Origin: Octopus sinensis
Lineage: Eukaryota
Length of the DNA stretch: 64,000 nt
NCBI RefSeq assembly: GCF_006345805.1
Contig: NC_043001.1
Span: 40,424,001 to 40,488,000 of the forward strand
Direction of reading: 5' to 3'
In this document: piece after piece, positions 26,846-52,739 of the stretch
Layout of the letters: every line of letters starts with the position of its first letter
How positions within the stretch are numbered: position 1 is the first letter of the stretch
Notes under the pieces: model-generated
The model's database searches: none
Told to the model about the DNA's origin: nothing
What the model saw: the letters and a program-made list of their open reading frames with translations, nothing else
Program-made: the position numbers and the translations under genes

Positions 26846-26963
26846 CTTGTGGTTCATATGGTACTCCACCATAAAAGCAAAAGGCAGAAAGCTCTCCACA
26901 GACTTTTAAGAAATCTTCATATACCTGTTTAGCCAACTCTCGAGTCGGGAGTAAGACTAATAC
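26846..26963 (-). CDS. DDX21: DDX21/DDX50-like helicase exon (motif Ia and GG doublet)
   Basis: ag|[40 protein letters not shown]|gttagt. 118 nt. Not in the ORF track. Confidence 0.95.
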
Positions 26964-27150
26964 CTAGAAAACATGAGAATTGAAATAAAAAAATTTTTAA
27001 ATAAAATTCAGAAAATATATGCAAAACATCATATAAAGAATAATAATTATTCAACATACCTTTCACTATTATGTGTTTCAATTAAATTCTAAAATAATTG
27101 TGAAATTTAGACTGGTTTTGTAAAACACAATTTTTGTTGAAATATGACTA

Positions 27151-27529
27151 TCTCTCTCTAGATAAATGCAGTTTGTCTGTGCGTTTTCTGTGTGTCTGTT
27201 TTCCTCGTACCCTCAACTCTGACCACGGCTTTCAACCGATTCTGATGAAACTTGACACACACATAGCCCAATGTCATAATTCAAAACTAACGCAGCGAAA
27301 ATTTTGAAATTTCCCCAGTTCTGAAAAAAATCGATAAATCGACATGGGGTCGAGAATCAGAACCCAAACCACAGACCGTCTAGGGGACGCAACTCCACCT
27401 TTTTTAACTCTCAAAAAATTTACCATCATTTTTTTTCCATTTTTTTGCTATTTTTTGGCTATAACTCTCTAAAAATGCTTTATAGTTATTTCCCTTACAA
27501 ACCTGAGCAACGCCGGGCGATACTGCTAG
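27151..27529 (+). mobile_element. Non-autonomous Helitron-like element
   Basis: A|TC...CTAG|T boundaries, with a subterminal GC-rich hairpin-like cctgagcaacgccggg. The 3' end is shared with 58342-58719. Confidence 0.65.
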
Positions 27530-27949
27530 TATATAATAATAAACAGATATAGCAGTTATTTTATAATAAGCGCAGAAAAAAGAACTGTGCACATTGATTG
27601 ATCTCCAATGTCATAGAGAACACTTGAAAGGAAATATACTAATGTAAATAGTCAATAAATTTTGAGTGATTTCTGAAGATTTAACAATTAGGTGTAGTTA
27701 GTTTCAAAAATATTGGATGAGAAATACTTTCAAATGCTTCCTTTTATTTTATTTTTAATCAATTTATCATCACTTCCACTACCACAGCCTGTTATTTTAA
27801 CAAAGAGCCTCTCCCTAAGAGTGAAAAGCAGATCTATGATACCTGCGTGCATACATGGGCTACAACTACAGAGGACATGCAAAGGCTTGAAAGAATGAAA
27901 CTAGCACACTCCACTGGATGGGTAATGTCAGTATGCATTTACAACAGAG

Positions 27950-28077
27950 TGAAGGGCATCCAGCTGTAGAAACTCTGCCAGATCAGATTGGAGTCTGGTG
28001 CAGCCATCTGGTTCGCCAGACCTCAGTCAAATCGTCCAACCCATGCTAGCATGGAAAGTGGACATTAAACGATGATG
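27950..28077 (+). mobile_element. RTE-LINE 3' tail copy
   Basis: gaagggcatccagctgtagaaac...ccaacccatgctagcatggaaagtggacattaaacgatgatg. Confidence 0.75.
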
Positions 28078-28094
28078 TAAATGATTTAAGATAA

Positions 28095-28620
28095 AAATTA
28101 GGTAAGAGGCATCAGTTGTAGTGTGCAAGAGAGAAGACTGCACTGGTATGGTTCATGTAAAGCATATGAATGAGAACAGTTGTTTAGAGATACCAATATC
28201 TAATTGTGGAAGGAACCTGTGGAAGAGGCAGACACAGGAAGACATGGAATGAAGTAATGAGAGGATCTTCAGACGTTGGGCCCCACAGAGGATATAACAA
28301 GAGACCAAGACTTCAAGCAGTTTGTTTGAGAAGATACATCAAACTAAGTAAGACTGTGGCTGTCCATACATGCAGGTATGTCTTATACGTCCTATTCTCA
28401 AAAAGGGGTCCTTGTCCTGGGGGCTTAGTACATGCTGCTGTCACAGAAAAAGTACTCATGCTGGTGTCACAGAAAAAGTACTCGTGCTGGTGTCACAGAA
28501 AAAGTACTCGTGCTGGTGTCACAGAAAAAGTACTCGTGCTAGTACCACATAAAAGTGCTCATGTTGGTGCCACTTAAAAAGCATTCAGTACATTCTGTGA
28601 AGTGGTTGGCATTAGGAATG
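28095..28620 (+). mobile_element. Diverged RTE-LINE C-terminus plus UTR
   Basis: ...VEGTCGRGRHRKTW... matches the RTE C-terminal GRGRPRKTW motif. Followed by UTR repeats and gaagtggttggcattaggaa. Confidence 0.65.
28432..28586. repeat. 26-bp minisatellite, about 6 units
   Basis: The unit gtgctggtgtcacagaaaaagtactc is repeated, the first four copies nearly perfect. Confidence 0.9.
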
Positions 28621-28827
28621 ATGAGGGGAAACTATCAAAAAATCCTAAACAACTGGCAATAGTTTACAGCTTGTTTACAAAATGAAATTCTGTTATCACT
28701 AATGTAATATCATGATTCTCATCAATATTTTGATTTAAATACAAACAGAAATCTTAGGTAGTTTTGAAAACGTAAGAATTATGTAGAATTATTACAGGTG
28801 TGTCATAAAGCATAATTATTTTCTTAC

Positions 28828-28899
28828 CCTAGGCATTCGACCTTCTTTTGTTTTCTTTTTTTTAATCAGTTTTTCTACCAGTGGCAAAACAAAGGAAAG
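28828..28899 (-). CDS. DDX21: DDX21/DDX50-like helicase exon
   Basis: ag|LSFVLPLVEKLIKKKKTKEGRMPR|gtaaga. 72 nt, phase 0/0, follows GKT as in DEAD-box proteins. Confidence 0.93.
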
Positions 28900-29676
28900 C
28901 TGAAATAAAACAAAGCAGTTAACATCTATTTATAAAGAGATAATTAAGGTACAATTTGTTTAACTGTCCCTAAACAAAATTTTAATATGTTGCTGATTAA
29001 ATAAGAGGAATACTTAAAATTTGTTTTCTAAACAACACCTATATAAATTCCATTAACAATGGTTGAGAAGTTACATTCAAAATATAAATAAATCATAATC
29101 TTTCCACAAACCACCGCTTTTGCGTCACTCAAAAGAGTTAAGTTAAAGGACATTTAAATAGTAGTAATACCAATTCCAAAGAACATTTCTCCCATGAACA
29201 AGAATGTTTAGTCTCAGTTCAGCACCGATGAAGCAGGTTTAGTGCTGAAAAGAATTCCTGTCATGATATGACATCTTTTTTTCAAGCAATGTACTATATC
29301 ATCCAATATGTTCTTCCTCTTTTAAATAAAGTTGTATGTAAGAATGTCTATAATGGAGGTAGATTTAGTGGAGGATTATTAGGTTCAGACATGGTTGATC
29401 CATTAATCTCAATAGATTTACCTCCAAAGACCATATAACTAATAAACAATTACTTTCACCTTCAGTCATTCTGTAACACACACCAAAATCATTTTAAGTC
29501 ATTCACTTCTATCTAAACTTTAATGTGGATGAAGATGGTCCAAGTAACTTTTTTGAATGAAAAGTGGTTTTCTTAACTTTGTAAGTGTAGATGCAAAAGT
29601 CAAAATATACCAACAATTTTCATTCACAGTTATGAATGAATGAAAATCAAAGAAATCATCAAATGAGCAAACTTAC

Positions 29677-29696
29677 TGTTTTTCCAGTGCCAGTTC
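29677..29696 (-). CDS. DDX21: DDX21/DDX50-like helicase 20-nt micro-exon (Walker A)
   Basis: tcttcag|GA ACT GGC ACT GGA AAA ACA|gtaagt = (R)TGTGKT. It is needed to join AQA-C to LSFVLP in frame. Confidence 0.92.
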
Positions 29697-31080
29697 CTGA
29701 AGACAGAAAAATGTTAAAATAAATTACAAAGAAACAGATGACAAAGAATGTAATAAATAATTTAGTGTCTTTTGTTTAAACTTTCAAGTATATTAGTAAA
29801 TACTAAAATAATCGTGAATTAACATTTTTGTTTATCAACATTTAAAGGTGGTGCTTGGATCAACTTAGCAAAAGATACTTAAATTTATGGTGGATTTTAT
29901 GATTCAGGATTCTAATTACAGGTAAATACAGGTGAATGTAATATTTATACTTTTGTTTAAATATCACTATGAAATACAAATTTTAATCAAAATTCAACTG
30001 GAACAAATGACAGAATTGTAATATCTGACATGAAAGAACCATGCAGGGATTGGATTTTCAATTGAACTCGATAGCATATAAAACAACTCCACATAACTTG
30101 ACATACACACTTTGTGAGGTTGCCTAGGATATACACAGGCACCTCAGACACTCCTCATTATACTGTTTCGTGTGTGCAGCAGACACTACTACTCATGAGT
30201 AAGATCCCCAAACAGTTTAAATCATTAAAAACTGGACAAAGCATGTCTACTAAATACTAGATTAGGTATTTCAACACATCACTTGATATTATTTGATTTC
30301 TAGAAATAAATCTTTCAAAAATGGTGCCTATTTACTTTTGAAATGTCTGTGTATAGCCAAAACATTTATCTCGCCTTATAATCTTCCTTCCTTACCTAGA
30401 CAGGTTTTATTGGCATATAAAACAATTATCTTTATAGAGTATGAAACAAGTGGCTTTAAAAAAAAATCACACGTAGGTCAGTAAGCTAGAAACAATATAT
30501 TAATGGGAAAAAGGAAGAATGCTGGATTTTACACTAACATTTGCAAATTCATTATTTGTCTTCCTTATTCCTTTGTTTATATTTTGCAAAGCAATTAGCC
30601 TCCAGAGTTATCTGGAATATTTGAATTTCTAAATTTGGCACTCTTTTCAAAAAAGGATAAAGCACTGTAAAAATACTAAGGTTTAAATAGGACTACCATA
30701 AAATCTAGAGAACATTTCCATAAGATTGTGAGGTAACGTGTAGTAAGTGTTTACATAGTGAAATTATATTACTGTTTACAACAGGCATGAATGCAGACAT
30801 GGTGTTTTGGCATCTTGGGCAAGTAGCCGTGATTCAATCTTAGCCTTATTCGTGGAATTTGGTTGATAAAACTGCGTGGAAGCCCACTGGAGGACCATTA
30901 CTGTTCTTGGGGGTAGACTTTATCATGTAGCACAACACCTTCAACTGGTCATTAGCAGCCTTTAGTGAAATATATTTTATTCCAACCATTCAAAACCGGG
31001 TCTCTGATATGAGGATAACTCACTTCCACAAGTTTCAAAGGACCTGATAAGGGTCACAAGTGCTGCACTTCTTTGATTAA

Positions 31081-32160
31081 CCCTTTTGTTACCAAACCGC
31101 CCCAAAAAAATTTTGGTTAATGTGACCAAACCGACCAAACCCGCCCATATTTACCTATTCATATTTAAATGAGAATATCAGAGCAAATCTCTTTAGTACA
31201 TTCGTGAAAACACGTGATTATACTTTGTAAACAGTTCATCTACAGTTTTGTACAAAGATCGAAGTGTAATTTTAATTCCGTGAATTTTGGGAGATTTTTT
31301 CCCAAAATTTGTTCCTATTGTGTTTTCAAAATTTGTAATTCTGACAAAAAATGGATACGAATTTCATTATATCAAGCAGCGAGTCAGAATTCGAAGGCTT
31401 TTCTACTGAAGACCTTGATAAATCTAACTCTATGACTGAAAAAAAAAAAAGCACGTGGTATTTGATAATGAATCTGATGTTTCATTTTCCGAAAGTGAAA
31501 ACAGTGAATCAGAGAGCTCCGACAGCGATAAAGAAAATGAATTGGCACCTGAATGGAGTGAAAATTTAAAAACTGTTTCTTTCGGTGATTTTTCTGAAGA
31601 AACTGGACCAAGCCACAGACTTTCCCAGGAGAGTAAAGTCTTAGACTATTTCTTTTTACTTTTTCGAATGAGCCTATTTGAAATCATTACGGCAGAAATG
31701 AACCGTTACACTAAATGTAAACAAAGCGAAAGAAGGGATAGTTTGTGGTTTCCCACAACCTTAAATGAAATTAAGACTATTTTGCCATAAATATTATTAT
31801 GGGTATCAGAAAGTTACCCAGAATAACAAATTCTATCGTAAAATTTTGTTGTATACCCAATTGAATATTAGCTAATAACCCATTTTCTATAGCGATGTTT
31901 GAACAAAATTTTAATAATTTTATATTTTGTTGAATTTACCTGTATCTACCTGCAATTAGAGTCACTTTGTGACAAAAATTATAGTATAGAATTGGTTGAG
32001 AACATTTCATTAAATTATCTTCCAAAAATCACATTAATATATTGATAAATAAAAAAAGTTATAGTTGTTTAATGAAACCAGACTAAATTTATGATTATGT
32101 TAGAAATTAATTGAAACACATAAGGGGTGTATTTTGGTCAGAAATATAGTAACGAAAGGG
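31081..32160 (+). mobile_element. Non-autonomous piggyBac element carrying a transposase N-terminal remnant
   Basis: TTAA|CCCTTTTGTTAC...GTAACGAAAGGG|TTAA. The remnant reads ...SESESSDSDKENELAPEWSENLK...LDYFFLLF..SLFEIITAEMNRY...WFPTTLNEIK. It is an inverted near-copy of 21806-22829. Confidence 0.88.
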
Positions 32161-32233
32161 TTAAGCAATAGACAAAAACATAGATTGCATTATGAAACCA
32201 ACACCATAAAGAACTGAAGGGAACAGGACTTAC

Positions 32234-32317
32234 GTGCTTGAGCAATAACATCGTGGCCATCATAGACATAATCAAAAGTTTGTGATTGAATTGGAAAAAG
32301 ATAATTGATATCATTGG
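32234..32317 (-). CDS. DDX21: DDX21/DDX50-like helicase exon (Q motif)
   Basis: ag|CC-NDINYLFPIQSQTFDYVYDGHDVIAQA-C|gtaagt. 84 nt. Confidence 0.94.
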
Positions 32318-33315
32318 CTGCAAAAAATTAAATGACAATAAGATAATGAAACAGTGCTGAAATATGAAAGATTAATTTAAATAATTTAGATAATGCATAT
32401 CAATGCTGGTCTTCAGTATTACACTGACTAAAATAACAGCAACTAAAGTGAAAAGTTGTAAGGATAACAGACCTCACAAAGTCTTTATATGGTAAACTGT
32501 ACAGTACAACAATCTTTATAGCCAGTCATTAATGAAATATAAGCCCACACCAATAATGGTAGCCGTAAGTGAAGAATGTAATTTATGGATGAACTTATGG
32601 CAAGATGTAGTAACACATATCTGATTTGCAACAGGAAAGCAATGTATCTGGTTTTCTCTTTTGTAATACAGTGACATGATCCTAGCTATTACTGACAGCA
32701 AGCATGAGTTCTTGTATCGATGAATCTGCCTTCTGACAATTTCATGTGAACCATGGTTGGTTTTGACTAGTTAGCACTTCATATTACTTCACATGCACAA
32801 TTCAGTTTATATTAGATGCCATACTAGTGGATTTTTTCTCTTTATTCTCATATATTCCACATTAACTGACTCAACAGATCTTTGGTCCAAATTGCATACC
32901 TATTGAATCAGGTTAGTTCTGATTACACAATTTTAACTATTTATATTTCACATTTATACAGCACTGTGTATAGCTATGTTTTGAAGAGAAGAAACTATGA
33001 AATGGTCAACTGTTGAAGACTGAGTATATCTTGTAAGTAAATAAAATAAATAGAAAGGGGAGCAGGAATTAAATACATTGCGTAAGCCCTGCATACAGAG
33101 AGATAAAAATCTTAATAGAATATATATATACAATACATTCCATCTATTCTATATACTATACCAACATAAATTCAACTTACTGAACCAATCAAGTTTTAGG
33201 GGAAATATTTATTTGAATATATACTATCAGAATTGAAATTGTCATATTGACTTTATTAGCAGAGAAAATTAGTACAATAAAAAAGAGTTTTAGCTGAAGA
33301 AAGAAAAAACAATAC

Positions 33316-33442
33316 CTTTCAATTTTTGAATAGAGGTGTCAGAAATACGGAAATTGCCAAAAGCACCAATTTCCACCTGGGGATCAACTTTGTCACTATC
33401 AGATGCACTAGACGCATTTCCATTCATATTGGTTTTGTTTTC
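33316..33442 (-). CDS. DDX21: DDX21/DDX50-like helicase, coding exon 2 (shared phase-0 acceptor)
   Basis: ctgacag|ENKTNMNGNASSASDSDKVDPQVEIGAFGNFRISDTSIQKLK-G|gtattg. GAFxNFxIS matches the DDX21 pre-Q region. 127 nt. Confidence 0.9.
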
Positions 33443-36296: not shown

Positions 36297-39022
36297 TAGT
36301 TGGAGCTATTTCTAATAACGATTACAATCTAATTTCCAAAATTACAAATATCTTAAATAGCTACTAATACTGAGGTCGTAGCAGTCGGATATCAAAAGAA
36401 AATAATTGTTAGAAGATAAACATTGCAAATTTTATTTTATGAGAAAATAACCGTTAGAAGATAGATAGACAGACATTGCAGATTTTACATTACTGTATAA
36501 TAACAATAATCGAAAATTGATCTATCAACAGAAATTGAGATTGAATTTCCTAAGAAATTGTATTCCAAAATACATATATATATATATATATATGCTACGT
36601 TATTTTAAATCCAACCAAATTAAAAGAAAAAATTAAGGACGATATCTTGGAAACTTGAAATATTATAATAGTACATTATATTTGGCACTGTGCCAATACT
36701 ACCATTTGACAAAGTACAGCATTTATATATCGTTTGCAACAAAGAAACTATTTTTAAAAGTGCATTTCTGTAGACATCCACGTGTCTAGTACAATGAAGG
36801 AGGAAACTTGATTTGAATAGATTACAGGAATCGAAGATATCTTTAATATTGAATAAAGTTACTGGAGATAACTACAGACATGAATTCTAAGTAAAACAGT
36901 GAATAAACGTTATGCACTTCATATTCTGAATATCATAGACTGAGAGGAACGGGCGACTTAGTTGCAGTAATGGCGGAAAAGGGATGGACGAACGACAGTC
37001 GACCAAGATAGCACTGAAATTTATTTTTTAAGCAGTAAAAGGGAAAATAGATAAATATGTGTTGTTGGTCATGCAACGGAACATGACATGAAAAATAAAA
37101 ATTTATCTTTAACATGTGCCCATAAACTAATCGATCATGGATATACTATTAAGTAGTATTATCAAATTGGAATTCATATAAGTTTCAATTAGTGGACTGA
37201 GGTGAAAGCACTTTTCTTTTCCTGAAGTTAGAATTATAATATCGCCCCATGCTTTTGTATGTATGTATGTGTGTGGTTTTCTAACGAGATAGAGAGCAGG
37301 GAGTTCTCGATGTACTTTACAAATTTATAAATATAGATATTCATTATAGCTTATCTCCGTGAATGTTCAGTTTCTCTGCGAAATGTGTGTGTGTAAATAT
37401 ATATATATATAATATATATATATATATACATACATACATACACATACATATAATATGCAACAGAGTAAAAAGTATAATACAATCGATATAAAGTTAATGT
37501 GAGTAAAAGCAACGTTCGTATTGATTAACGAAAAGCTTTCACGACAAACTAGAGCTAAACAAACCATCAGCCATGACCCAGTTAGCAGCACTTCCTAAGT
37601 TACAAGTATTCTGTTAGATACTAAAATGCAACCAACAACGACACGTTCGTAACGAGCTTAAAATAACAATCTTAATAAGCATTAAAAATGCTGAGCTTGA
37701 GATGAAAACCCCCAAATGAAATTAATTACAAAATAAAATTATACTAGTTTTTCAGACCTCAAATTGCCTTTTAGATCAAAATTGTATTTTGTTAAACGTT
37801 ACTGTATTAAAATATAACTGAAAATATTTCGTAATTGTACTCGTTTGGCGAGTGACTTGATCTGACACAATGAGTAACGAAATAATTATTTTATGGAAGA
37901 GCCAGTCATTTTAACAAATTTAAGAACATAGAAACTTATTTCGAATATTTCTTAATAGCAAGGACCCAAAATTTCGCCGCACACTGGTGACCAAGTGGTC
38001 ACTGACCGAATGCTACTAGATACGTACAACACTAAGCCAGAAAATAAAGTACAGTTCACCTAAATGTCCAAGTTAATAAGTCAATCAAGAAACCGTAATT
38101 ACATATACAAGCTGGAGACATATGTCATATTAGGAAGTTCATAATCAACGAACGGAATCGCGTTTATTTTCTTATACAGATCTGAAAAATAATCTTAAGT
38201 TGATGTATAATAATTACTTACTTTAAAAGTTGCCATGCTTTATATATCCAACGATAGAGTTAAGGTATTCTTTAATTATCAAACAATAAATGTAAATTAA
38301 TCCATTATTAGATGAACGCAATTGACAAATGGGCGCGAATATATTCAATTTTAATGTGTGTCCGGACAAGGATATAAACAAAATTAGTCTTCCAATCGCA
38401 TTGAGAATTCACGCGTGCGCCCGAGTGTGACTCGATCGCTATAAAACAGTCGGGAAATTTTTCACATTGCTAACGTAATAAGTGTGTCAAATATATCTGT
38501 GATACCTGTGTGGATGTATACATGTGAACAAGTGGTTATCAATTCTGGATATATAAATATTCTACTTGCGACAGTACAAAATCGTAATATGCACAAAGCG
38601 AATGGTTACGACATAGAAAAATCACTTAAGCTGGAAATCGGAAAACAATGCCATAAATTTAATATGATATTGTTTCTGTGCACGTGTCCATATCTTCCAT
38701 CAAAATATATTTAATCAAGGACAAAACAGACTTGGAATAATAGAAACATATAAATTGAAATTTTTAAAATTCAATATTCGTTTATGATTATAATAAATAC
38801 ATAAATGAATTTTAAACCGGATTATTAACGTAAGAGAGCTCCACAAAGACTTGCATATATGTTAAAAATCTTCGTTATATTTTCATTCTTAAAATTTTTT
38901 TTTTTTTTTTAGTGATTGAAACCTGGTATCTCTTTCATACTAAATATAAGCGAAATATACATTTGAATATGGGGTGAGTGAAACACTCGATATAATATTT
39001 AAAAGATTAAAACAAAACTGAC

Positions 39023-39070
39023 GTTTTTCTTGAGTTTCTCTTTCGGATCATCACTAGATTTCGCAGTCAT
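39023..39070 (-). CDS. DDX21: DDX21/DDX50-like helicase, first coding exon, copy A (proximal)
   Basis: ATG at 39070. Reads MTAKSSDDPKEKLKKN|gtcagt, 48 nt, phase 0, compatible with the acceptor at 33442. A promoter cassette lies 150 nt upstream. Confidence 0.75.
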
Positions 39071-39204
39071 CCTTTTGATTTAACGATTTTCAATCTTCTC
39101 CCGCCTTTGAGAATTCGATTTTACAATATTCAGAAATAGCTGGTAATGCCGAGAATTTCAAATAAATAAACTCGACTAAACACGTCACTGAACTTGGTTC
39201 GCGT

Positions 39205-39270
39205 ACCCAATCAGATAAGCACGTGTGGGAAGCTGACGCCTCAGGAAATATGAAAACGTCACATCCGTTC
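39205..39270 (-). promoter_or_regulatory. Promoter cassette A (E-box, GGAAAT, CRE-half/ETS composite, CCAAT)
   Basis: CACGTG 39220-39225, GGAAAT 39244-39249, ACGTCA 39256-39261 followed by ATCCG, CCAAT 39207-39211. The cassette is conserved in copies B and C. Confidence 0.65.
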
Positions 39271-39919
39271 AACCTGCTTTCCTTCCATGTGACACGTTAG
39301 CTCTTATATAATTTTAACTACTAATTGAAATTAATTTCACCACGTTCCACTTTGTGGCTCGCATCTAATATAAACCATCGTTTCGGTAATCAATGAGCAA
39401 GTTATTTATTTCTTCTGTGGTCGCTAGACACAGCATCCAAATCTTCCTCAAGCCACACAAGTCTCATCACATAAAGGACACATCATATTGATATAGTAGT
39501 CCTAAACATACCAATAAAAAAGACGGGGTGGTCACGACTGTAATACCTTAAATCATCATGTCTGCTTAATGATGAGCTAAGCTATCCCTTCAAAGAAGAA
39601 CTGTTCGAAACGTCACCCCATTCTTACAGCCTGCTAGAAATACCAGCCAAATATCTTTTAAGTCGCATCTTACCGTCTGAAGAAGGATGGATGTATTGGA
39701 TAACACAGTTCTGAGGAAATACTACTTGGGGGAAAAAAGACGAACGGCTTCAGAGCCACTAGTCATAGAACCACTCAATCACGGTTGATTTTGGAATGGA
39801 CAACACACGAAACTATATTACTACCAAGTCGATATCGGCGTGGTTGCTTCACCGGGTTTAGAAATAGCAGCAAAATAGTTTTCGAATTATACGCGACAAG
39901 GTAAAAATAACAGGTGGAG

Positions 39920-40380
39920 TTCTGATCGAAGTACATCATAAATTTTTTTGAGGCTAATGCAGTTTCGCATCTCCTTGTAAAATGAATTTTTTTGAAAAAC
40001 TTTTTTTCGGATTCCTACGTTTTAGACATGCAAATCGAAATTAAATACAGACAAAAACATTAAAGGAAAAAGAATTTGCGTTTTACTTTTGTTTACCTTA
40101 ATTAACAGTAAGTAATATTTTAATGTAAATTAAATATACAACATGGAAAGACTTCTGCCCGTCCCAACTTTTCAAAAAAATGCATTTTTCAAGGAGAGGT
40201 GCGAAACTGCATTAGCCCCCATTTTTCTTTTTAAGAATTTTCAGAAAATCTTACGATTATGCAAGAACTCCACCTCAAAATACAAGCATCAATTCGATAT
40301 TGTAGCTTTTACAGACACTGAAATACTGAAAACAGGAGGGGCGGAGCGCATTTGCACAAGCATCTACTCTTAGATTCCTC
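39920..40380. mobile_element. Element with internal inverted arms (MITE-like)
   Basis: ggctaatgcagtttcgcatctccttg (about 39952-39977) is mirrored by caaggagaggtgcgaaactgcattagcc (about 40190-40217). Confidence 0.5.
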
Positions 40381-41483
40381 AACATTACTGGTATATATAT
40401 ATATCAATTTTAGATTCTATATTTATTAGGTTGATTATCCTTTTCCGAAAATGTATTTCGGAAGGCTAAGTCTAAGCTTGTATTATTGTAGAATATTTAT
40501 GTGGAGATGTAAACATGGCTGTGGTTAAAAAGTTCACTTCGCAAATACGCGATTCCGGGTTCGATTCCAACGATTACTACAGAAACTCTACGTACGTTTA
40601 GTTGTCGAATATGCACGTGAATATAGAAACTACACGCTACATTATTTTATACAAGTGACTACTAGGATTAAATGAACTTAGTTGTTATTTACAGTTTATG
40701 GTATATTCTACAGGGATAAACAAAACAGCACACTTTTAGATGTTTTGGAGAAAGTATCTACTTTTATATTTTTGTACAGTAGTTTCTATGTGATCCCTTC
40801 CATATCATAGCGGAGGTAGCTATATATATATATATATATATATACATACATACACACGTACTTCACACAACTATATTGGTTAAAACGACCGATTTTTGGT
40901 AAGCGTAGTAAATGCCAATATAGATCGTTAAAATAAAAATCTCCATTTTTCTAAAAGTTATGAGGAAACAAAGTTGGACGAGGTATGTCATAATTCTTGT
41001 GGTTTGACATCGATCGATCAATGACTAAAAAAGCTTCAAGTACAAATGATAAACCCCACTCAAAAAAATTTATGTTCTATTTCGTCGTTGTTGACAAATT
41101 ATCATAAATATAAATTACAAAATTTTACATGAGATTAAGTATAGAAGAAATTATCCTTTCAGATACTTCACGTGACTTTATTTCTTAAAAGTATACATTT
41201 AAAAATCCGATCAGAAGACAAAAGTAATATATATATATATATACATACAGATATATAGTGGACAATTTTTTTTTTAATAACAACTGAATTTACATTAACT
41301 CACTCACTCACTCTATTCAAAGAATTGATTGAAAATTCAACAGAAAATCCCATTTGCTTATTGTTTCAGTATATACAACTGAGAGCAGAGTAGATAAAGG
41401 TAAGTAAAGTTGTTTATACAAGTGAAAATCCTTCTACAACAAAATCAAAATACAACCTCTATGTGAATAAAAATAATACCAAC

Positions 41484-41531
41484 TTTTTTCTTCATCTTTT
41501 TTCTCGAATCTCCATTAATTTTCGTAGTCAT
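41484..41531 (-). CDS. DDX21: Paralogous first coding exon, copy B (putative alternative exon 1 of the helicase)
   Basis: ATG at 41531. Reads MTTKINGDSRKKMKKK|gttggt, 48 nt, phase 0. Identity by hand count is 34/48 nt to A and 38/48 to C. Confidence 0.6.
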
Positions 41532-41714
41532 TCCAGGTAACAACTTTTCGACAATCTTCAATTCTACTGTTTTCTTCTTTGAACTTATGTATATATATTT
41601 ACCCACAAGACAAACAAGTACGGCGAGGTTTACAAACAAAACACTCAGCTAACAAATATAAATTTGTTATAAGTAACAAATATAGTTTGGCAAGTTTTCT
41701 TGACCAAGGTTCGA

Positions 41715-41770
41715 GAGCACGTGTAAAATTCTAGCAAACCCGGAAATATGAAAACGTCATATCCGTTTAC
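41715..41770 (-). promoter_or_regulatory. Promoter cassette B
   Basis: CACGTG 41718-41723, CCGGAAAT 41740-41747, ACGTCA 41754-41759 followed by ATCCG. Confidence 0.6.
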
Positions 41771-42384
41771 CTCATTATCATTCCGTGAGACAATTGGAAA
41801 TTCTTTTCCATTTACTTTATCTTAGACTTATTTCTATCACTGAGGTGCGGCCATGCTAGGGTACCGCCTTGAAGATTTATTATAGTCGAAGGAAACGATT
41901 CTGGGGATTTTTTTTTTCCGGCCTGGTACTTGTAAAATTGTCTTTATTGTAACTGAGGGAAATAAACACATTAACGCGAACATAAACTACACACACATAC
42001 AATGGGCTTCTCAGTTTCTGTCTACCAAATCTATTCACAAGACTTTGATCGGTCCGTGGCTATAGTAGGAGACACTTGCCCAAGGTGCCACGTAGTGGGA
42101 CTGAACCTAGAACCGTGTGGTAAAGAAGCAAACTCCATACCATACAACCACACCTGCATTTTCTTACTATTGCTCAAAATTGGTCTGACTCAGACACAAA
42201 GGTCCCAGATCTTAAGAGAGGCGAATGGAGTGGATGTGTATGTGTGTGACAGACTGTATTTTCATTAATACACTTTCAGCATATGATAATTGAAATGGTT
42301 TCAATTGAAATTTAGCTTACTTTATGGGGGAAACATTGCAAAATATACCTCAAGTCAGCAATATATTAACACCCCTATTAACAC

Positions 42385-42895
42385 TTTTTTTTTTTACTCT
42401 TTTTACTTGTTTCAGTCATTTGACAGTGGCCATGCTGGAGCACCGCCTTTAGTCGAGCAAATTGACCCCAGGACTTATTCTTAGGAAAGCCTAGTACTTA
42501 TTCTATCGATCTCTTTTGCCGAACCGCTAAGTTACGAGGACGTAAACACACCAGCATCGGTTGTCAAGCGATGTTGGGAGGACAAACACAGACACACATA
42601 TATATTATATACATATATACGACGGGCTTCTTTCAGAACCGCTAAGTTACGAGGATGTAAACACACCAGCATCGGTTGTCAAGCGCTGTTGGGAGGACAA
42701 ACACAGACACACAAACAAACATATATATTATATACGACGGGCTTCTTTCAGTTTCCGTCTACCAAATCCCCTCACAAGGCTTTGGTCGGCCCGAGGCTAT
42801 AGTAGAAGACACTTGCCCAAGGTGCCACGCAGTGGGACTGAACCCAGGACCATGTCGGTAAACAAGCTACTTACCACACAGCCACTCCTACGTCT
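42385..42895 (-). mobile_element. Long SINE with an internal tandem duplication
   Basis: gaaccgctaagttacgagga...gacgggcttctttcag occurs twice (about 42520-42635 and 42636-42750). Confidence 0.8.
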
Positions 42896-44394
42896 ATTAT
42901 TCTATTATGGAATAGTGGATCCTCAAGCACTTTTTTCAACTCAATATTTGCATGCTGTTATTTATAGATTTGTGCTTCGAGATCCACTGTTCCGAAAAAG
43001 AAATATTTCACCTAGAAAGTTTATGATTCTCCATATAGTTACTTGTTCTATTTAAATCAGCCGTTCAGACAGCCCTCTGAGTGAAGGTGTTCCGCTGTGA
43101 CCACCTACTGTGTTTTTCTTTTCCTAAAACAGATTTGAAGGAGCTGTAACTTCTATATTCAACATATTGCGTAGAAGTTCCTCTCGTTAACTCTCAACTA
43201 CATTTTAAAATTCAAATCCCGTGAGGATTCATTCTTTCGAACAATCCGGCAGTTAGCGCAATATTTTTCCAATAAATATGTTCTATAAACTTGTTTCATA
43301 CATTGAGAATGTACGACTACAGAAAAGGGTGAGAGTATGAACGAAATTTTCACAGTAAAAATCCACTCCGGTTTTTTTTTTTTTTGCGGGGGGAGGGGGG
43401 TATTTATTTATAACCCTACATACAGTAATTGTGTAAGAAACATTTAAGTACAAGGTATAGGATTACAATAACATGGAAGAGGACAGTCTAGTAGTAAATT
43501 TCTTTCAATAACAAAACGCAGTCACAACACGCACTTAGGAAGTATTCAAAAGGAGACGATTAGAACCAGGATAGTCATGATCGAGCAAACTTCTAAACAG
43601 ACATTCCAGCCATGACCATCCCGTCTTTTTTTACATTTCTTAAATCTCTCTCTAGATATGTTAAGATAATTTCGAAGGAGAATTTTCCTTCTATTTCTCA
43701 CATCCATACGATTTTAGTTTCATTGCGATATAAGGCCGACAAGACATTTTATAAGGGTTTTGTAGCGAAGATCGAATTGACTCGTTTTGTGATCCGAAGC
43801 TACCAAAAGATCCCCTCTTTGGTTTAATTGCGCACTGAGAATACATACGGAAACAAATACATATACTTTATCCATAACCCTATAACTGTATATGTATTCA
43901 TAACCCACTTAAGTAATTACTGTCAGGCTGTCTACGTGCCAATTAATAGGACGTGGTCAGACTGCACTTAAGCATATGTTTAAAATGTCCTAAGTGGCCT
44001 TCAATTACTATCACTGTTTTGGGACAGCGAAATGAGCAAATCTTGAGTTGTCAAACAATGAAACCAATCCGCTCAACATTCAGCCCATGCAGCCAAAAAT
44101 GGGTTCGTGTGCTTCATTTCACAAGCAAGACTATATAGCTGATGTCCATACATCAGCTATAGACTTAATTGGGTAAGATCTGGGATCCAAAGAAACGGTC
44201 TGCGTCAACAAAAGTTAATCCATAAAGATCAGATATTGTTGTGAGGAGTGAAAATCCAACGTTTTAGATACTTGTCCTTCGGAATTTAAAATCCTTCTTA
44301 ATTTTATTAAAAGTAGTATTTTGTCTGCTTCTTTTTACTATATCTATAGCACCACTCCACACACACACACACCTATGACAAACATTGATTCAAG

Positions 44395-44760
44395 CCATAA
44401 GAGAGGAATTTAAAACTGGCTGGCTGTGAGAATTTCGGTATGCTGATGACCTTGCTGAATCTGAAGATTTTAAAAAAATTCCAGATATGGAAGTAAAATC
44501 AAGACTCAAGTGATCTCAAAGTAAACTTAGCAAAGACTGAAATTTTACTCTATACAAAAGAAGAAAGGACCTTGCTACTATCAGGGAAATTGTCATGCTC
44601 AATATGTAGAAAAGAGGTACATGGAACTCCATATGGTGTACTCTATAAATGAAGAGGCATAGTCTGGCCGAGAAGGCACAGGCTGGCAGAGAAGGCACAT
44701 TGTAAGCAATAAGAGAAGATTAGAACAAATTTCTTGAAATACTTAAAAGGCTCCTTAACA
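44395..44760 (+). mobile_element. RTE-type LINE reverse transcriptase fragment
   Basis: Reads YADDLA...KF.IWK...LKVNLAKTE...SGK..CSICRK: the RT catalytic motif plus the Cys-rich insert of this RTE family. Frameshifted. Confidence 0.7.
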
Positions 44761-45107
44761 CTTTCGGCTCGGCTGGTACATATTAGTACCAGTCAAAAAT
44801 TTTACAACTTAAATCTTTAAAATTCCCACTCTATGTAAATCAGTATAGTACCACTCCAGGCATATGATTGGAGTGTATATGACAGCTCAAAAGGCTCGCA
44901 TGCATACAAACCCCTCGCCATTACAGACAGCTCTTAAGTGTTTATTATTGGTTCTCATGCTTTAGTAAGCTATTAATAACATTTTCTTCACTGTAAACTT
45001 ATCATAAACACATTATGCATAGTTTACAAACATTGGATAGTAATATTCTTGCAACACTGTTGCAATACATATTTCTAAGAGTAAATAATTTTGAGTAGTA
45101 CACACTC

Positions 45108-45358
45108 AAGCCGGTGGCACGTAAAATGCACCAATCCGACTGTGGCCGTTGCCAGCCTCGCCTGGCACCTGTGCAGGTGGCACGTAAAAAGCACCCATTA
45201 CACTCACGGAGTGGTTGGCATTAGGAAGGGCATCCAGCTGTAGAAACATTGCCAGATAAGACTGGAGCCTGGTGCAGCCTTCTGGCTTCCCAGATCCCCG
45301 GTCGAACCGTCCAACCCATGCTAGCATGGAGAACGGACGTTAAACGATGATGATGATG
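45108..45358 (+). mobile_element. RTE-LINE 3' tail copy
   Basis: Two ggtggcacgtaaaa modules, then ...ccatgctagcatggagaacggacgttaaac(gat)n. Confidence 0.8.
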
Positions 45359-46989
45359 ACACTTGTACTATTGTGGTTTTGTATAGGTAACCACTTGTAC
45401 CATTGTAGTTTGTTGTATAGCTAAGATTGTACCAGTTGTGTTATAAAACTGTTAGAGAAACTTTTTTTGTTGGGAATCAAACATACACAGTTTTTCAATC
45501 AACCTTCATCTTACTCCCTAATATTTGAAATATTTTTTTTTTTGCAAGATTCACTGCGATATTTTGATATAACTGGTACATACATGGTACTTCATCTAAA
45601 TACAATGTTACATGCCTGGTAGATTAGAAAACCCAAATGGTACAAATATGTGCCAGGCTAAAAATAGTGTCTACCTAATTGGCACTGTTATAAACCATCT
45701 AAGAAGAATCTACCCAAATTTTAGAGAAAAAATTCTGGGTTAAAAGTAATTGAGTTCAGAGTTATTCTGATAAAAAAATTGTTTTAGGGTAATTGGCAGA
45801 TTGTATTATGTTTGTGTATGAAGTGCAATGCTGCATGGTAGTGCGGCGAGGACTTTGAATGCAGAAAGAAAGAAATAAGCTCTACTCAATTTGTAATTGT
45901 AGCGTGCTTAAGCACAAATGAATTTAGAGAAAAGCTGGATATAAGAGAAATCAGATGTACTGTGCAAGACAGACTGCATCGATATGAGTATGACACATAT
46001 GGAGGATGTCAGTTTTATCAAGTAGTAGTTGTTCTAAGTGAAAAAGACTTAAAACGACATGAAATTTTGAAGACTGATCTCAAAAAGCTGAACTTTGCAA
46101 AGAAAGTGGATGATTATAACTGTCAATACAACAGTACTTGAGAAAACCTATGCAAGTTTTGCAAATAGATGTTAAAATTGGTAAATATAAGTTGAGATGA
46201 TTATTTACATCTGTTAAGACACCAACCACTGTAGCACACTACATAATGAAGGATGGTATCGTATGTCTTTATTCACCCCCACAACATTGCCTTTTACATT
46301 ACCTCCTTTCCATCCTGATGTAATGAGGGATGGTTTCAATTTATCCATATTCATTATCCGCTATCATCAACTTTCTCTATGACTAGCTACCTCATTCTTC
46401 TCCATGTCACTCTTTAATAACCATCACCTATCTCTATTGCAATTACTCTTTCATCATGGCTTTTTGCTACGATTCTCACTCAAATACACGCTCGCTCTCT
46501 CTTCTGTTGCTATGTTGACATAAATCGCTCTTTCTCACTTTCATCACACATTACTCAGTCTGCTTTCCAACATGTGACATATAGCAATCACTATGTTTCA
46601 TTACTCACTTGACTAACACTTTCTTGCTCCCATTACTATGTTCCATCCATCATATCTTAGTCTCTTTGTTTCACTCTCGCACTCAAATTTGCCCCCTTAG
46701 TTATACAGGACAACGCAATCTTTCTAACACTTGTCCCGTTACAATAAAACTCTGAGTACACTGTAAAGTGGTTGGCATTAGGAAGGGCATCCAGCCATAT
46801 GTAGTAATTCTAAATTTATAAATACTGAAGTAGTAGCAAAAGTACAGCTCAAAATTAGGTCTATAGTTTATCATGTATGAGGGAAAAGTTCAATTTCTCC
46901 AATATAAGATTTTTATCCTTATTTTTCTATGGTTTTTATTAAGTTGTTTCATAAAGAAATGATTTTATAACTACATAAGCTTTTTTATT

Positions 46990-47985
46990 TCAGCAATGTG
47001 GTAGGGGATGAAAACACCACACAGCTATCACCTGGTGGTAATGTATGTTTCAATAGTGAAAGGCAAACAGTTACCAAAAGCAATAACAGCTGCCATTTTA
47101 TATGATCTTTACTAGAACTAATACATTTTTACATCATCCTCAGACTGGATGAAATTTACATCACTGGCCCAATTTTCAAAACCAGAAAAGGATCTATTTG
47201 GGGTTGTGTATGTAACACATGAAGAACCCAAGCAACCATTGTAATTCAATATTCTGAGGTATAGATAGCTTTTCAAAAGCCTGAGAGTTGAATATTCTGG
47301 AACGATGATAATGATAACTTGATTCTCCATATGAAATCAGATACCTTAAAAAGTTAATAGAGGTTAGATCATATCTACATTTTTTATGTTTACAGTCAGA
47401 TTACCATGATCGTTAGCTTTTAAGAAATAGGAAATGCATCATGCTTTTTTACACCACAAGCTAAACATGACTAGATACTTCTAAGAAAATTTTTGTTCAT
47501 AAATTTATTAATGACTCACCAAAAACACAGATACACCATTTGTGATATAGGAAATCAAGTAAAAAGGTAAAGAACCCAACTGTTTGGAAAGAGCATATTG
47601 TCTTTTGTCAGGTAGTATACCAACTTGATAATAGGGGCCACAAAGATCATTAGTATTTAAGTTTGGATACACCACTGACCAAATCATCTACACAAGGAAC
47701 TTGATAAGCATCAAACTCTGTAAAACAGTTGAAAGGTTGACAGATTTATTACAAGCCTTTTCCAACTGGATTTGCTAAGATTGAGATTAAACTTATTATA
47801 AGCCTTTTCCTACTTGATAATTGGATATTCTACAACAGAAATTGCATTCACCCTGGGTATTATTTGGCTCCAAGATACCTTCTCTACAGCTTTGAAATAT
47901 TTTTATCTAAAATTCTCAACAAAAGGGTTGCAGTTTGGAGTGAGATTTTTTAAAAATTAGCTGGTTCCTTTGCCACTTAAAGTCG
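46990..47985 (-). mobile_element. Decayed Ty3/Gypsy pol fragment (RT to RNase H start)
   Basis: Frameshifted remnants GILEPNN (GIIEPS), KRLVI, NCFTEFDAYQVPCVDDLV (NRFTELDAYPLPRIDDL), DLCGPYYQV, ITNGVSVF, LQWLLGFF and PFTIET. Confidence 0.72.
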
Positions 47986-48042
47986 AGTAAGACCACAACC
48001 ATCATCAATGTCACTTAAACCATTTAACATTCAGATTTCTCT

Positions 48043-48420
48043 CTTTACTCTTTAACTTGTTTCAGTCATTTGACTGCGGCCATGCTGGAGCACCACCTTT
48101 AATCGAGCAACTCGACCCCAGGACTTATTCTTTGTAAGCCCAGTACTTATTCTATCGGTCTCTTTTGCCGAACCGCTAAGTGACGGGGACATAAACACAC
48201 CAGCATCAGTTGTCAAGCAATGCTAGGGGGACAAACACACACATATATATATGTTCATATACATGAAGGGCTTCTTTCAGTTTCCGTCTACCAAAGCCTT
48301 GTGAGTCAGCCCGAGGCTATAGTAGAAGACACTTGCCCAAGGTGCCACGCAGTGGGTCTGAACCCGGAACCATGTGGTTGGTAAGCAAGCAACTTACCAC
48401 ACAGCCACTCCTGCGCCTAT
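48043..48420 (-). mobile_element. Long SINE, near full length
   Basis: ctctttactcttt..cttgtttcagtcatttgactgcggccatgctggagcacc...ccaaggtgccacgcagtggg...accacacagccactcctgcgcc. Confidence 0.85.
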
Positions 48421-49041
48421 TAGTCTATCAAGTATAATGCTTCTTTATTCACATTGTTTTGAATTAATCATAAATTATCTTGTACCTTCAGAATTTTAAA
48501 GATGTGTTTGAATATTTTTAGAATGACATTGTAGGATAGGTGTGAGAGGTTGGATGTGGTCAGTTTAGCATAAAACAGGTAGAATATTTGGGCAAGATAT
48601 GGCCTGATTAAATGCTTACATGGACCAGACAAAACCCAAGGTTTGTTTTCAATGGCTGGCTGCCCTTCTTGTTGCCAACTCTCAAGAAAGACTATAAATG
48701 AACAACTTCACTTGTATGACAAGAGTACACACACACACACACACACACACACGTGTGTGTATGTAGCTTGTCTGAAGTGGAGTACAGAGTTTATATACTA
48801 AGAAAACGAAAGTAGTCAGGATTTGGATAACTTTATTTAACGCTTACCATATGTAGGTTATTATTTTTAGAAAATCCATACCTTTTATATATATAAGTTA
48901 GTTAAAAAAAATCTGGAGTTGAATTTGTTTGCTTAGGTTTTGGAAGTGGTTACTCGAGATATGTATTTGTGGGCAAGCATGTGTGAGTGATGAATTTTTA
49001 AATAAAGTATGAGAACATGTGTATGTGTGTGTATGTATATG

Positions 49042-49085
<44 letters not shown>

Positions 49086-49499
49086 CAGATAGAGAAATGG
49101 AGAGCACAGCAATAATAAGAATGAACATGGGCACTGACTGGGTACTTGTTTTTCCAGCTGTTACTTATGTTTCAGTATTCAGCAATGTGACTTCATGTTA
49201 TAGATGCAACTAGTAAATGCACCCTATAGAGGCCAAATAGTGAGTAGAGACACATCACCAGACAGCTAAAGAAGATTAATACTAGAGCCAAAACCTGATT
49301 GGTTTAATTTTTGCATGTTGAGCACATCCAATCATACACACACGCACAGTGAGTTTCTCAGTTTCTACCTACCAAACACATTAGCAAGGATTTCCTTAAC
49401 CTGAGGCTGTAGACGACATTGGCCCAAGGTACCATACAATAGGACTGAACCCAATACCACATAGTTGGGGAGCAAATATCTTAACCACACATCCATGCT

Positions 49500-49907
49500 T
49501 GTGACTCAAAGGCCAAGAATGACTGTGGTTGCTTCCCAACCACATGGTTCCAGGTTCAGTCCCACTGTGTGGCACCTTGAGCAAGTGTCTTGTACTATAG
49601 CCTCGAACTAACCAAGACCTTGTGAGTGGATTTGGTAGATGGAAACTGAAAGAAGCCGTCGTGTAACAGGGTTTTGATTGTCCCAAGGCTATAAGTAGAA
49701 GACATTTGGGTCAATATAAAAACCTTCATCCGGGAACAATTGAAAAATTGTGTGTATATTGTGTGGTAAGTAGCTTGTTTACCAACCACATGGTTCCGGG
49801 TTCAGTCCCACTGCGTGGCACCTTGGGCAAGTGTCTTCTACTATAGCCTCGGGCCGACCAAAGCCTTGTGAGTGGATTTGGTAGACAGAAACTGAAAGAA
49901 GCCCGTC

Positions 49908-49960
<53 letters not shown>

Positions 49961-50260
49961 TGTGTGTTTGTCCCTCTAGCATTGACAACCGATGCTGGGG
50001 TGTCTATGTCCCCGTTACTTAGCGGATCGGCAAAAGAAACCGATAGGATAAGTACTGGGCTTACAAAAGAATAAGTCCTAGGGTCGAGTTGCTCGATTAA
50101 AAAGCGGTGCTCCAGCATGGCCAGTCAAATGACTGAAACAAGTAAAAGAGAAAGAAAGTGTCTGTGTTTGTCCCCCCCCCCTCAACATCGCTTCACAACC
50201 GATGGTGGTGTGTTTACGTCCCCGTAACTTAGCAGTTCGGCAAAAGATACCGATAGAATT
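49500..50260 (+). mobile_element. Cluster of long-SINE copies (partial head, full copy with (TA)n, partial middle)
   Basis: Heads at about 49525 and 49760, tail to about 50155, and a further fragment at 50157-50260. Confidence 0.8.
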
Positions 50261-50262
50261 AG

Positions 50263-50465
50263 GGTACTATTTAAGGTACTCGTGCATCTGCGCTCGCTAG
50301 TCATGACTAGTCGATCCTCACTGTGTTTTTATTTTATTTACTTTGTGTAAAAAAATTATTTATTTTGTGTTTTATTTACTTTGCTATGTAGTCGTTGTAA
50401 GATCGACTAGTCACGACTAGTTAGCGCGGATGCGCGCACCGGGACCACTTTTCTTAAATAGTACC
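50263..50465. mobile_element. MITE with GGTACTATTTAAG termini
   Basis: ggtactatttaag...ctagtcatgactagtcgatc is mirrored by gatcgactagtcacgactag...cttaaatagtacc. It truncates a SINE fragment. Confidence 0.7.
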
Positions 50466-51015
50466 GTAATGGAGAAGGGATATTTGTTTCATATTCTCTC
50501 GCTTTAGGATTAGAAAGTGAAAGCAGAAGTCGTCAATCTTTATAAAAGAGAACTATCGCACTAAGCACTAGATATCAGACGCTGTCTCCAACACATCTGC
50601 AAGAATTTTGTTGGTGCAGAAGCCATGAAAGTAACGCGGCCCTCATGCAAAGTTATAATTTTATTAGTAACGGTATCATGTTACAAGAGGGCCCCGGAGG
50701 AAAATGTAAGGCTTTCATTATCAATCACGTAGAAATATGTTCTAAAAATATTTTTACTATTAAATAAAAATTGAAGGCAATCGAACGTCACTTCAAGATA
50801 ACTTGAGTCGGTGCAGTCTTCAGAAACCTCGTGGGTACAGAAAAATTGATAGAAGGCGCACGCTAGAGTTATAACATACTTAAATCCAAATGAATTCTCT
50901 AGAATTTTCATTACTAGTACATTGAATAAAATAGCGGTTTTAAGTTGTTCAATTACATTTTTCGATAACAAAGGAACGTTAAAATATATTTATATATAAA
51001 AAAAATAATACCAAC

Positions 51016-51063
51016 TTTTTTCTTTATTTTCTTTTTTGAATCTTCATTAACCTTCGCTGTCAT
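51016..51063 (-). CDS. DDX21: Paralogous first coding exon, copy C (putative distal alternative exon 1 of the helicase)
   Basis: ATG at 51063. Reads MTAKVNEDSKKKIKKK|gttggt, 48 nt, phase 0. Identity by hand count is 36/48 nt to A and 38/48 to B. Confidence 0.6.
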
Positions 51064-51242
51064 ACTTTTTTGATAATCCTCAATTTTTTTTTTTTTGTTT
51101 CGTTTTTCTCCGTTGATAAGCTGAATTTATATATTTCAAAGAAGACAAATTGGTATGCTGAGGTTTTAAAAGAAACAAAACACTCAGCTAACAAATATAT
51201 TGCTATATTTTAGCAAATTTTCTTCGGACACCAAGTTCGGAA

Positions 51243-51295
51243 CAGCACGTGTAAGAAGTTAACTATTCCGGAAATGCAGATACGTCATATCCGCT
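51243..51295 (-). promoter_or_regulatory. Promoter cassette C
   Basis: CACGTG 51246-51251, CCGGAAAT 51268-51275, ACGTCA 51282-51287 followed by ATCCG. Confidence 0.6.
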
Positions 51296-52739
51296 TCTCT
51301 CTCTATCGTTCTGCGTGATGAGTGTGAAAAAAAAAAATTCTTTTGTTTCGTTATATTTATTCTCTTAAGTTATTAAGTTTCTCTCTTAGAAACGAGGTTA
51401 CTGGTTTTATGGGAAACGAAAAATAGGATTTTGTGCGGAGTGATTTTGCCATAAGCATCTGCAATCTAAGAATCCCATTCTAAAATATACCTTAAGTTTG
51501 TATAATGTGTTTAGTTTAGGTTATCCCGGACAGGCAGACTTATGGGTAAAAGCGGTTCACCTTGTCTTTTAGATGTAATATATCTCAAGAAAGACTACGT
51601 CGTTTTGTTTGTTTATTTGAAGGAAATTTGGCTGCTGTATCCATTTTGCTTACTCTACAATTTCTTTCGTATATACAAAAAAAAAACAGATATCTTCGGG
51701 ATCATCTTTAGATCTAGGTCGTTCCACCATGAGGATTTTGTTTTAATTAGTGATATCCATGATGACGTTATCTGATGTGTCTTACCTTCTTTTTAAGATC
51801 TTAGGGTATGATTTAGAGGTTTGGCTGCTTTTCATGGGGGCTCCCTTGTAGTTTGTTGGAATAAATAAATATACCGAGTTGCTTATATTGACTCATATCC
51901 TAACGCATTTAATTTCACTGGGATATTGTGTCCATGTGAGCTTGTCAACAATTTGGGATGAAATCGAACTGATAGGTTTCAAATGCAGGTCATCCTTTCT
52001 ACATTATGAGGGAATTTCTTGTATTTGTTGGCTCTTCCTGCATTTTAGCAGTTCGCCTAAATGTGTAATTTTCTATTGTTTTGATATCCTCTTTGTTAGC
52101 GCACTGCTGATTGCATAATTTTGGATTCAAGCTGTTTTTCAGCTCATACCAAAGTATGTGAAAAAGGTTTGTTATTGATTTAGACAAGGTTTGCATTTTA
52201 ACATAACCATTTGTGTACAGTGGAAGTCAAAATGTTTCTAGGTATGTGATATGTGCCAGAACAATGGATGAATCTCTAATAGCAAAGATTTGGAGATGAG
52301 CCTTCATAAAGCTTGTGCTGAGTAAAACTGGTGTAGAATTTAAAACAGATTGAATATACAAATGAAATTTCAGTCACAAATGTGCTAGGTGCAGCACATA
52401 TGGGTATATTTGTAAGGTGTATTCAAGAAACGTAGACTTTGTTCATCAGGATGGAAAGGACTTTGGTCACCATATCACATCAAAGCTGCACTAAAGAAAT
52501 GTTGCAACAGCAGATATTTGTTTGGCAATCATCATCATTTTATGTCTGTTTATCATGCTGGCATGAGATGGATAGATTGTCATAGTCCAAGGTACCTTCC
52601 ACTGGGAGCTACAATTCCCAAAGACAAGTTGCTTATATGTGTCATGTGGCTAATTCTTCGAACAGGAGGAGTCAAAGAACTTAGCCCTAATGAACCTCTA
52701 AGTAAATTCTTTGCTGAACTTACTGCTGACTCTCACTAC

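Follow-up and report, generated by a model that had tools for sequence, protein, structure and literature searches.

Three paralogous promoter and first-exon cassettes in tandem ahead of a single DDX21-like helicase gene in Octopus

How many ways are there to begin the DDX21-like RNA helicase of an octopus, and are all of its duplicated beginnings functional? The locus that raises this question lies in a 64,000-nucleotide (nt) stretch of Octopus sinensis DNA (NCBI RefSeq assembly GCF_006345805.1, contig NC_043001.1, positions 40,424,001 to 40,488,000), called the window here, with positions counted from its first letter. On the minus strand of the window, three short cassettes, A, B and C, each with a putative promoter and a coding mini-exon, stand ahead of one helicase gene body. 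A preliminary description of this DNA had read them as an old tandem array of alternative promoters and first exons, with variable exons ahead of a constant body, giving three N-terminal isoforms. Our analysis indicates that A, B and C are probably all real alternative first exons in Octopus; C is the only one of the three modules detected in RNA-type data here. The cassettes comprise the following features, of which the mini-exons were read directly from the sequence and the promoter blocks were found by profile match. The triad is a set of three motifs described below.

39023..39070, minus strand: coding mini-exon of cassette A (proximal), MTAKSSDDPKEKLKKN, followed by a phase-0 GTCAGT donor
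39071..39306, minus strand: promoter block and 5' untranslated region (UTR) of cassette A, triad at 39261-39220
41484..41531, minus strand: coding mini-exon of cassette B, MTTKINGDSRKKMKKK, followed by a phase-0 GTTGGT donor
41532..41803, minus strand: promoter block and 5'UTR of cassette B, triad at 41759-41718; the orthologous block in the Octopus bimaculoides locus L004 is at 18440-18785
51016..51063, minus strand: coding mini-exon of cassette C (distal), MTAKVNEDSKKKIKKK, followed by a phase-0 GTTGGT donor
51064..51332, minus strand: promoter block and 5'UTR of cassette C (profile match 51332-50989), triad TGACGT..TTCCGG..CACGTG at 51287-51246

Every cassette exon opens with ATG, spans 16 codons and ends at a phase-0 GT donor; on re-reading and recomputation, the coordinates first reported for the three proved exact to the base. 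The coding exons are identical at 34/48 positions between A and B, 36/48 between A and C and 38/48 between B and C (70.8-79.2%), in agreement with the 71-79% counted by hand in the preliminary description. Its tally for B and C was reproduced as well, with five synonymous and five non-synonymous codon differences, the latter mostly conservative. As it had also stated, the coding parts contain neither indels nor stops and the flanks are rich in indels: the flanking promoter and UTR pairs have 8-11 gap openings per ~190-200 aligned nt. Homology between the cassettes covers ~320-340 bp, from ~270 nt upstream of the ATG to ~25 nt beyond the donor, where it ends in both 600-bp alignments and a profile scan. 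B and C keep a KKK-x-KKK / RKK-x-KKK cluster that is weakened in A. This cluster resembles a classical basic import signal and would suit a role in nuclear or nucleolar targeting.

Could the cassettes derive from a mobile element, or from a repeat scattered through the genome, in which an ATG and a GT are present by chance? The surrounding introns are indeed rich in elements resembling short interspersed repeats and in other repeats, as multi-copy BLAST matches and repeat-type loose ends of contigs attest. However, whole-genome searches with B and with A returned no copies outside this locus, and the encoded peptide is the conserved N-terminus of DDX21 across cephalopods, decapods included. 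We reject this explanation as scarcely credible. A profile built from the three copies found no fourth match within the 64-kb window.

Downstream of the cassettes lies a single DDX21-like gene body, which begins with an exon common to all forms.

33316..33442, minus strand: shared exon 2, ENKTNMNGNASS...GAFGNFRISDTSIQKLK, with its acceptor at 33442 in phase 0; it holds the internal ATG of isoform X5 (see below) and is joined by a spliced contig
17487..33315, minus strand: constant gene body with DEAD-box core, DDX21/DDX50 dimerisation and GUCT region, Gly/Arg-rich tail and stop, delimited by a tblastn exon chain, open reading frame (ORF) motifs and the Pfam domains of the orthologue, and present in single copy

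Exon 2 is preceded by an ..acag acceptor, and an RNA contig uses the same site, which bears out the phase-0 exon that had been placed at 33442. Searches by tblastn with the O. bimaculoides protein and its relatives confined helicase exons to 33442..17490 on the minus strand; none was found in the window between or upstream of the cassettes, as the preliminary description had held for the intervals between them. ORF translations and tblastn matches show that the gene-body exons carry the Q motif, DEVD (motif II), SAT (motif III), HRSGRTGR (motif VI) and a Gly/Arg-rich tail, so that the core motifs of a DEAD-box protein are present. The O. bimaculoides orthologue (P0165) contains DEAD, Helicase_C, DD_DDX21-DDX50 (PF26142) and GUCT (PF08152) domains, the last two following the core as in the DDX21/DDX50 family, and its exons match the window at 90-100% identity as far as the stop codon. 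Scanning genomic DNA directly with PF08152 gave no match, the domain being split by introns. A search with a single DDX21-specific exon found only one matching place in the 2.72-Gb genome, so there is one gene body and no hidden paralogue. From family membership, the product is presumably a nucleolar RNA helicase of ribosome biogenesis with a role in rRNA processing. The N-terminal region ahead of the core is very short in the cephalopod protein, 16 aa plus about 26 aa, compared with ~100 lysine-rich residues in a tunicate-type relative (P0058).

We next compared the locus with that of O. bimaculoides, whose protein cluster was reached with a profile of a tunicate-like relative together with the window exons. 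RefSeq describes this protein, "nucleolar RNA helicase 2", in five isoforms, X1-X5 (XP_014770272-XP_014770276), which all run on into the same exon 2. The N-terminus of isoform X1, MTAKVNEDSKKKIKKK, is identical to cassette C at 16/16 residues, and that of isoform X2, MTTKINGDSRKKMKKK, is identical to cassette B at 16/16. Isoform X3 begins with MTAKSSDDSEKLKKN, a 15-aa version of cassette A. Isoform X4 begins with MATFK, the product of a further first exon, D, described below, and isoform X5 starts at MNGNASS, from the ATG inside exon 2. The layout reported here, with its five N-termini ahead of one gene body, is already implicit in these automatic models of another species, which are silent on the origin of X1-X3 from paralogous tandem promoter-exon modules.

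The O. bimaculoides locus (L004) aligns collinearly with the window (~86-88% identity) and has the cassettes in the same C-B-A order, with spacings of 8.7 kb against 9.5 kb in the window between C and B, and 3.0 kb against 2.5 kb between B and A. These observations dispose of the idea that the triplication is an assembly artefact, or that the cassettes belong to collapsed or unassembled full-length paralogues, an idea in whose favour nothing was found. An independent assembly shows the same order at similar spacing, copies that are 71-79% identical are not recent or collapsed repeats, and the DDX21-specific exon is single in the genome, with no helicase exons among or above the cassettes. We regard such an artefact as next to impossible, and the mis-assembly that the preliminary description had named as a danger to its own reading is thereby ruled out. 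Its contrast with vertebrates also holds, in that only the 5' module is multiplied here, ahead of a gene body present once.

Between the two Octopus species, flanking sequence has about 7-8% substitutions and many indels. The B and C exons differ from their O. bimaculoides counterparts by one synonymous change each; in the A exon, a Ser/Pro change and an in-frame indel of 3 nt accompany a single synonymous change. In the promoter segment from -200 to -100, identity is 100% (100/100) for C, 98% for A and 92% for B, and the 5'UTR of B is 83% identical with 13 gap columns. B thus looks conserved as a coding exon, and A looks less constrained and drifting.

All three cassettes share the motif triad TGACGT..TTCCKG..CACGTG within an identical 42-nt span. 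From general knowledge of motif classes, we take TGACGT to be like a cAMP response element, TTCCKG to be ETS-like and CACGTG to be an E-box. The triad matches the window three times and none of 100 shuffled versions. It also occurs in all three O. bimaculoides cassettes and in copy 2 of the two Argonauta cassettes introduced below, and the exact 42-nt span is kept in 6/6 Octopus cassettes. Each variable exon has a conserved triad upstream of it; transcription is supported for C only, with zero depth on A and B in four runs.

The assumption of three N-terminal isoforms needs to be amended: there are at least five N-termini, including MATFK and the start at the exon 2 ATG, and one first exon had been missed.

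38222..38868, minus strand: first exon D, encoding MATFK from the ATG at 38236 (coding part 38236-38222) and followed by a GTAAGT donor; found by pattern search, by match to isoform X4 and in RNA contigs

Exon D, situated downstream of A and upstream of exon 2, is likewise in phase 0 but without homology to A, B or C. Its 5'UTR is long, at least 630 nt, and includes a CpG-rich GCGCACGCG-type motif at about 38425. No homologue of exon D was found at the Argonauta locus. Neither the MATFK form nor the form starting in exon 2 has the lysine cluster.

Which of these first exons appear in RNA from O. sinensis? Public runs were searched with the exon C region only (51016-51215). At least 14 assemblies, 36-115 Mb in size and drawn from six studies or more, contained a fraction of 0.9-1.0 of the sampled exon C words; since the genome measures 2.7 Gb, assemblies of this size are transcriptome-sized. 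Contigs from four of these runs, X1, X4, X7 and X11 (run labels, distinct from the isoform labels above), were placed on 38100-41800. Across the four assemblies, exon D was the best-covered 5' exon, with contigs at 38221-38659 and 38221-38868. In runs X1 and X4, the exon D contig has a 26-nt loose end whose reverse complement is the start of exon 2 (AAAACAAAACCAATATGAATGGAAAT). Because this contig joins exon D to the start of exon 2, these two runs represent RNA and 33442 is a used acceptor. A direct splice to the common exon 2 was seen in this species for exon D only.

The same contig bears indirectly on cassette C. It ends 27 nt into exon 2, counting the 26 loose letters and an ambiguous G. 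Such a stop would fit a branch in the k=31 assembly graph if the exon that competes with D for exon 2 has ...AAA as its last letters, which is true of C and B; had that exon the ending of A, the 31-mer graph would break at 30 nt, not 27. This supports indirectly a splice from C to 33442 in O. sinensis. Direct splicing of all three cassettes to exon 2 is suggested by the O. bimaculoides isoform sequences, and for C by this graph-branch argument as well.

Coverage of the other two mini-exons was nil. Runs X1, X4, X7 and X11 had zero depth on the exon A bins (38968-39215) and the exon B bins (41200-41800), with one exception at exon A, where a contig of run X7 (38922-39027) takes in no more than the final 5 nt of the exon and runs on into the intron. 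Intronic contigs were present in the runs examined at a depth of 2.5-12 and yet exon depth was zero, so any use of A and B in these samples must be very weak. In this species, their use and the activity of their promoters are suggested by the gene models of the sister species and by sequence conservation. The earlier interpretation is upheld in part: its layout of variable and constant exons is right, in agreement with the paralogous modules, the single body and the O. bimaculoides isoforms, but co-equal use of three isoforms is not shown, A and B having zero coverage.

In runs X1, X4 and X11, unspliced contigs at 39296-40196 (depth 2.5-12) border on the A promoter block at its upstream end, stopping at 39296-39301. 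These contigs carry no strand information; they may represent intronic pre-mRNA that was started at a promoter further upstream, or the product of divergent transcription at promoter A. At 40171-40220 and 40934-40976, many contigs pile up with unrelated loose ends on both sides, as is typical of expressed or embedded short interspersed repeats.

We then looked beyond Octopus. Decapod transcripts (cuttlefish and squid type) assembled from public runs have a main first exon, MTAKLNGESKKKSKKK, of the same peptide type, spliced to the same exon 2. They also have alternative first exons of unrelated sequence, MAGPHYTQEK and MDGIDSSLQRRLRQ; no duplicate of the main first exon was seen among these transcripts, the decapod material consisting of transcripts only. 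The Argonauta hians locus (L003) has two cassettes. The distal one encodes MTAKSNGDSKKKMKKK. The proximal one (L003 12581-12873) keeps the triad and the GT donor, but ATT replaces ATG and a 2-nt insertion causes a +2 frameshift, leaving only MKKK in frame before the donor, with a short upstream ORF, MSTWNYNEYLW, ahead of it. Stops or frameshifts in orthologous copies had been named as grounds for abandoning the array; in O. bimaculoides B and C are intact.

The peptide type appears to be ancestral to cephalopods. By exon sequence, C is closest to Argonauta copy 1, from which it differs at 5 nt, and is the most ancestral-like copy. A maximum-likelihood tree of eight cassettes paired A with Argonauta copy 1 and B with copy 2, contrary to where the copies lie, on long branches and with approximately unbiased (AU) test p-values of 0.04-0.11. 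We did not draw orthology from this tree or from exon distance, as the tree lacks resolution and disagrees with gene order. One duplication or more may be older than the divergence of Argonauta and Octopus. For the same two reasons, the duplications may instead have been independent in Argonauta and Octopus. The array had been described as old, and its age is thus partly resolved, with two copies in Argonauta, one of them dead.

The ratio of non-synonymous to synonymous substitution rates (dN/dS, NG86) for B against C is about 0.1-0.26. Against the decapod exon dN is 0.14-0.18, and A has a higher dN against the other copies, 0.23-0.34.

How firmly can all three cassettes be called functional? 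Several points weigh against it. Zero depth on A and B has been given above, and the four runs were chosen for having exon C, so that relative promoter use cannot be judged from them. The C-to-33442 junction was not directly seen, and isoforms X1-X5 are automatic predictions, that is, gene models only. With 48 nt per exon the statistics are weak: the probability of at most one change per exon is about 0.1, and that of no indel in the coding part is about 0.06-0.14 per pair. Relative to O. bimaculoides, exon A has one altered residue and an indel of a whole codon, and its basic cluster is weaker. The proximal Argonauta coding exon, apparently dead, indicates that such copies can decay.

These points can be assembled into a different account, in which only C and the unrelated D are functional, B and A are leftover duplicates with nearly silent promoters, and isoforms X2 and X3 are rare noise transcripts; the 16-codon frames would stay open because the exons are short and the copies still alike. 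Depth was zero on A and B in 4/4 RNA assemblies in which D and introns were covered, the loss of the KKK-KKK cluster fits relaxation of A, and the dead Argonauta copy and the brevity of the exons lend themselves to the same account. Nevertheless, the B peptide is unchanged between two Octopus species, with a synonymous change only, next to a 5'UTR of its own that has diverged to 83% identity with 13 gap columns. The B-C dN/dS lies well below 1, the exact span of the triad is kept in six Octopus cassettes, and O. bimaculoides has gene models for all three; the silence in RNA comes from only four runs, each picked for having exon C. We consider it unlikely that B and A are mere leftovers.

Preferring three real alternative first exons, we propose that one ancestral cephalopod promoter and coding first exon of ~0.3 kb, with a peptide of the type MTAK-N--SKKK-KKK, was tandemly duplicated in octopods. 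In Octopus, this would have resulted in three modules, C distal, B in the middle and A proximal, each keeping the triad at fixed spacing, a 5'UTR, a 16-codon lysine-rich ORF and a phase-0 donor, and each able to splice straight to the common exon 2 at 33442. The promoter in use would then decide how the gene is regulated and also which 16 residues open a helicase that is otherwise the same, and exon D and the exon 2 ATG would yield forms without the lysine cluster.

A more ambitious proposal is that the modules are sub-functionalised, with promoters for different tissues or stages, lysine-rich tails that tune nuclear or nucleolar import, and an array under selection since before the Argonauta-Octopus split. 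A hint in this direction comes from the four RNA-type runs X21-X24, which share a sample or study with exon-C runs and have zero exon C words; this may reflect promoter switching between samples, or just low coverage. Such specialisation is conceivable, although we think it rather doubtful. If true, the array would serve a ribosome-biogenesis factor as a cheap substitute for duplication of the whole gene.

Clusters of multiple variable first exons are known from UGT1, GCNT2 and the clustered protocadherins (PMC1885805, PMC3325998). The octopus locus resembles these in having tandem paralogous first exons, here three ~320-bp blocks in the same orientation, with putative promoters of their own, constant exons downstream to which all would splice, and an origin by local duplication. 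Unlike in those clusters, the variable exon is a 16-codon basic tail rather than a whole, functionally distinct domain: all members encode 16 residues of one peptide type, and there are only three of them plus one unrelated exon. The octopus array is not known to have a stochastic or CTCF-type mechanism of choice. The gene concerned presumably encodes a housekeeping nucleolar helicase, unlike the diversity-generating receptor and enzyme clusters. Decapod DDX21 combines the same main peptide type with alternative first exons, but there the alternatives are unrelated to the main exon.

In vertebrates, duplication of the entire gene produced DDX21 and DDX50. These belong to the same family as the octopus gene, with a DEAD-box core, dimerisation domain, GUCT domain and Gly/Arg-rich tail; the octopus multiplied the 5' module only.

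The locus presents a genuine though ordinary instance of alternative first exons, a minimal variable-first-exon cluster with no domain-level diversity. It changes no general principle, since variable-first-exon arrays and alternative promoters are well known and the isoforms were already in the RefSeq set of O. bimaculoides. In the literature searched, we found no paper discussing DDX21 in cephalopods. What the locus offers is a small and clean example of how duplicating a promoter with a tiny coding first exon may diversify the regulation and N-terminus of an essential single-copy gene. It also corrects the annotation expected of cephalopod DDX21 to five N-terminal forms, three of them paralogous.

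Two features elsewhere in the window are of minor interest. Within the helicase introns, two related ORF fragments (..FEIITAE.NRY.KCKQSERRDSLWFPTTLNEIK..) lie in opposite orientations, at 22123-22501 on the minus strand and 31351-31790 on the plus strand, and by appearance they resemble relics of one transposon family. Window positions 7877-9588 (and ORFs at 4437-4905) are 95.5% identical to O. bimaculoides, against a background of ~87%; the counterpart of the segment at 7877-9588 in the O. bimaculoides locus L004 is the first part of an adjacent THAP-domain gene, predicted there at 50804-52102.

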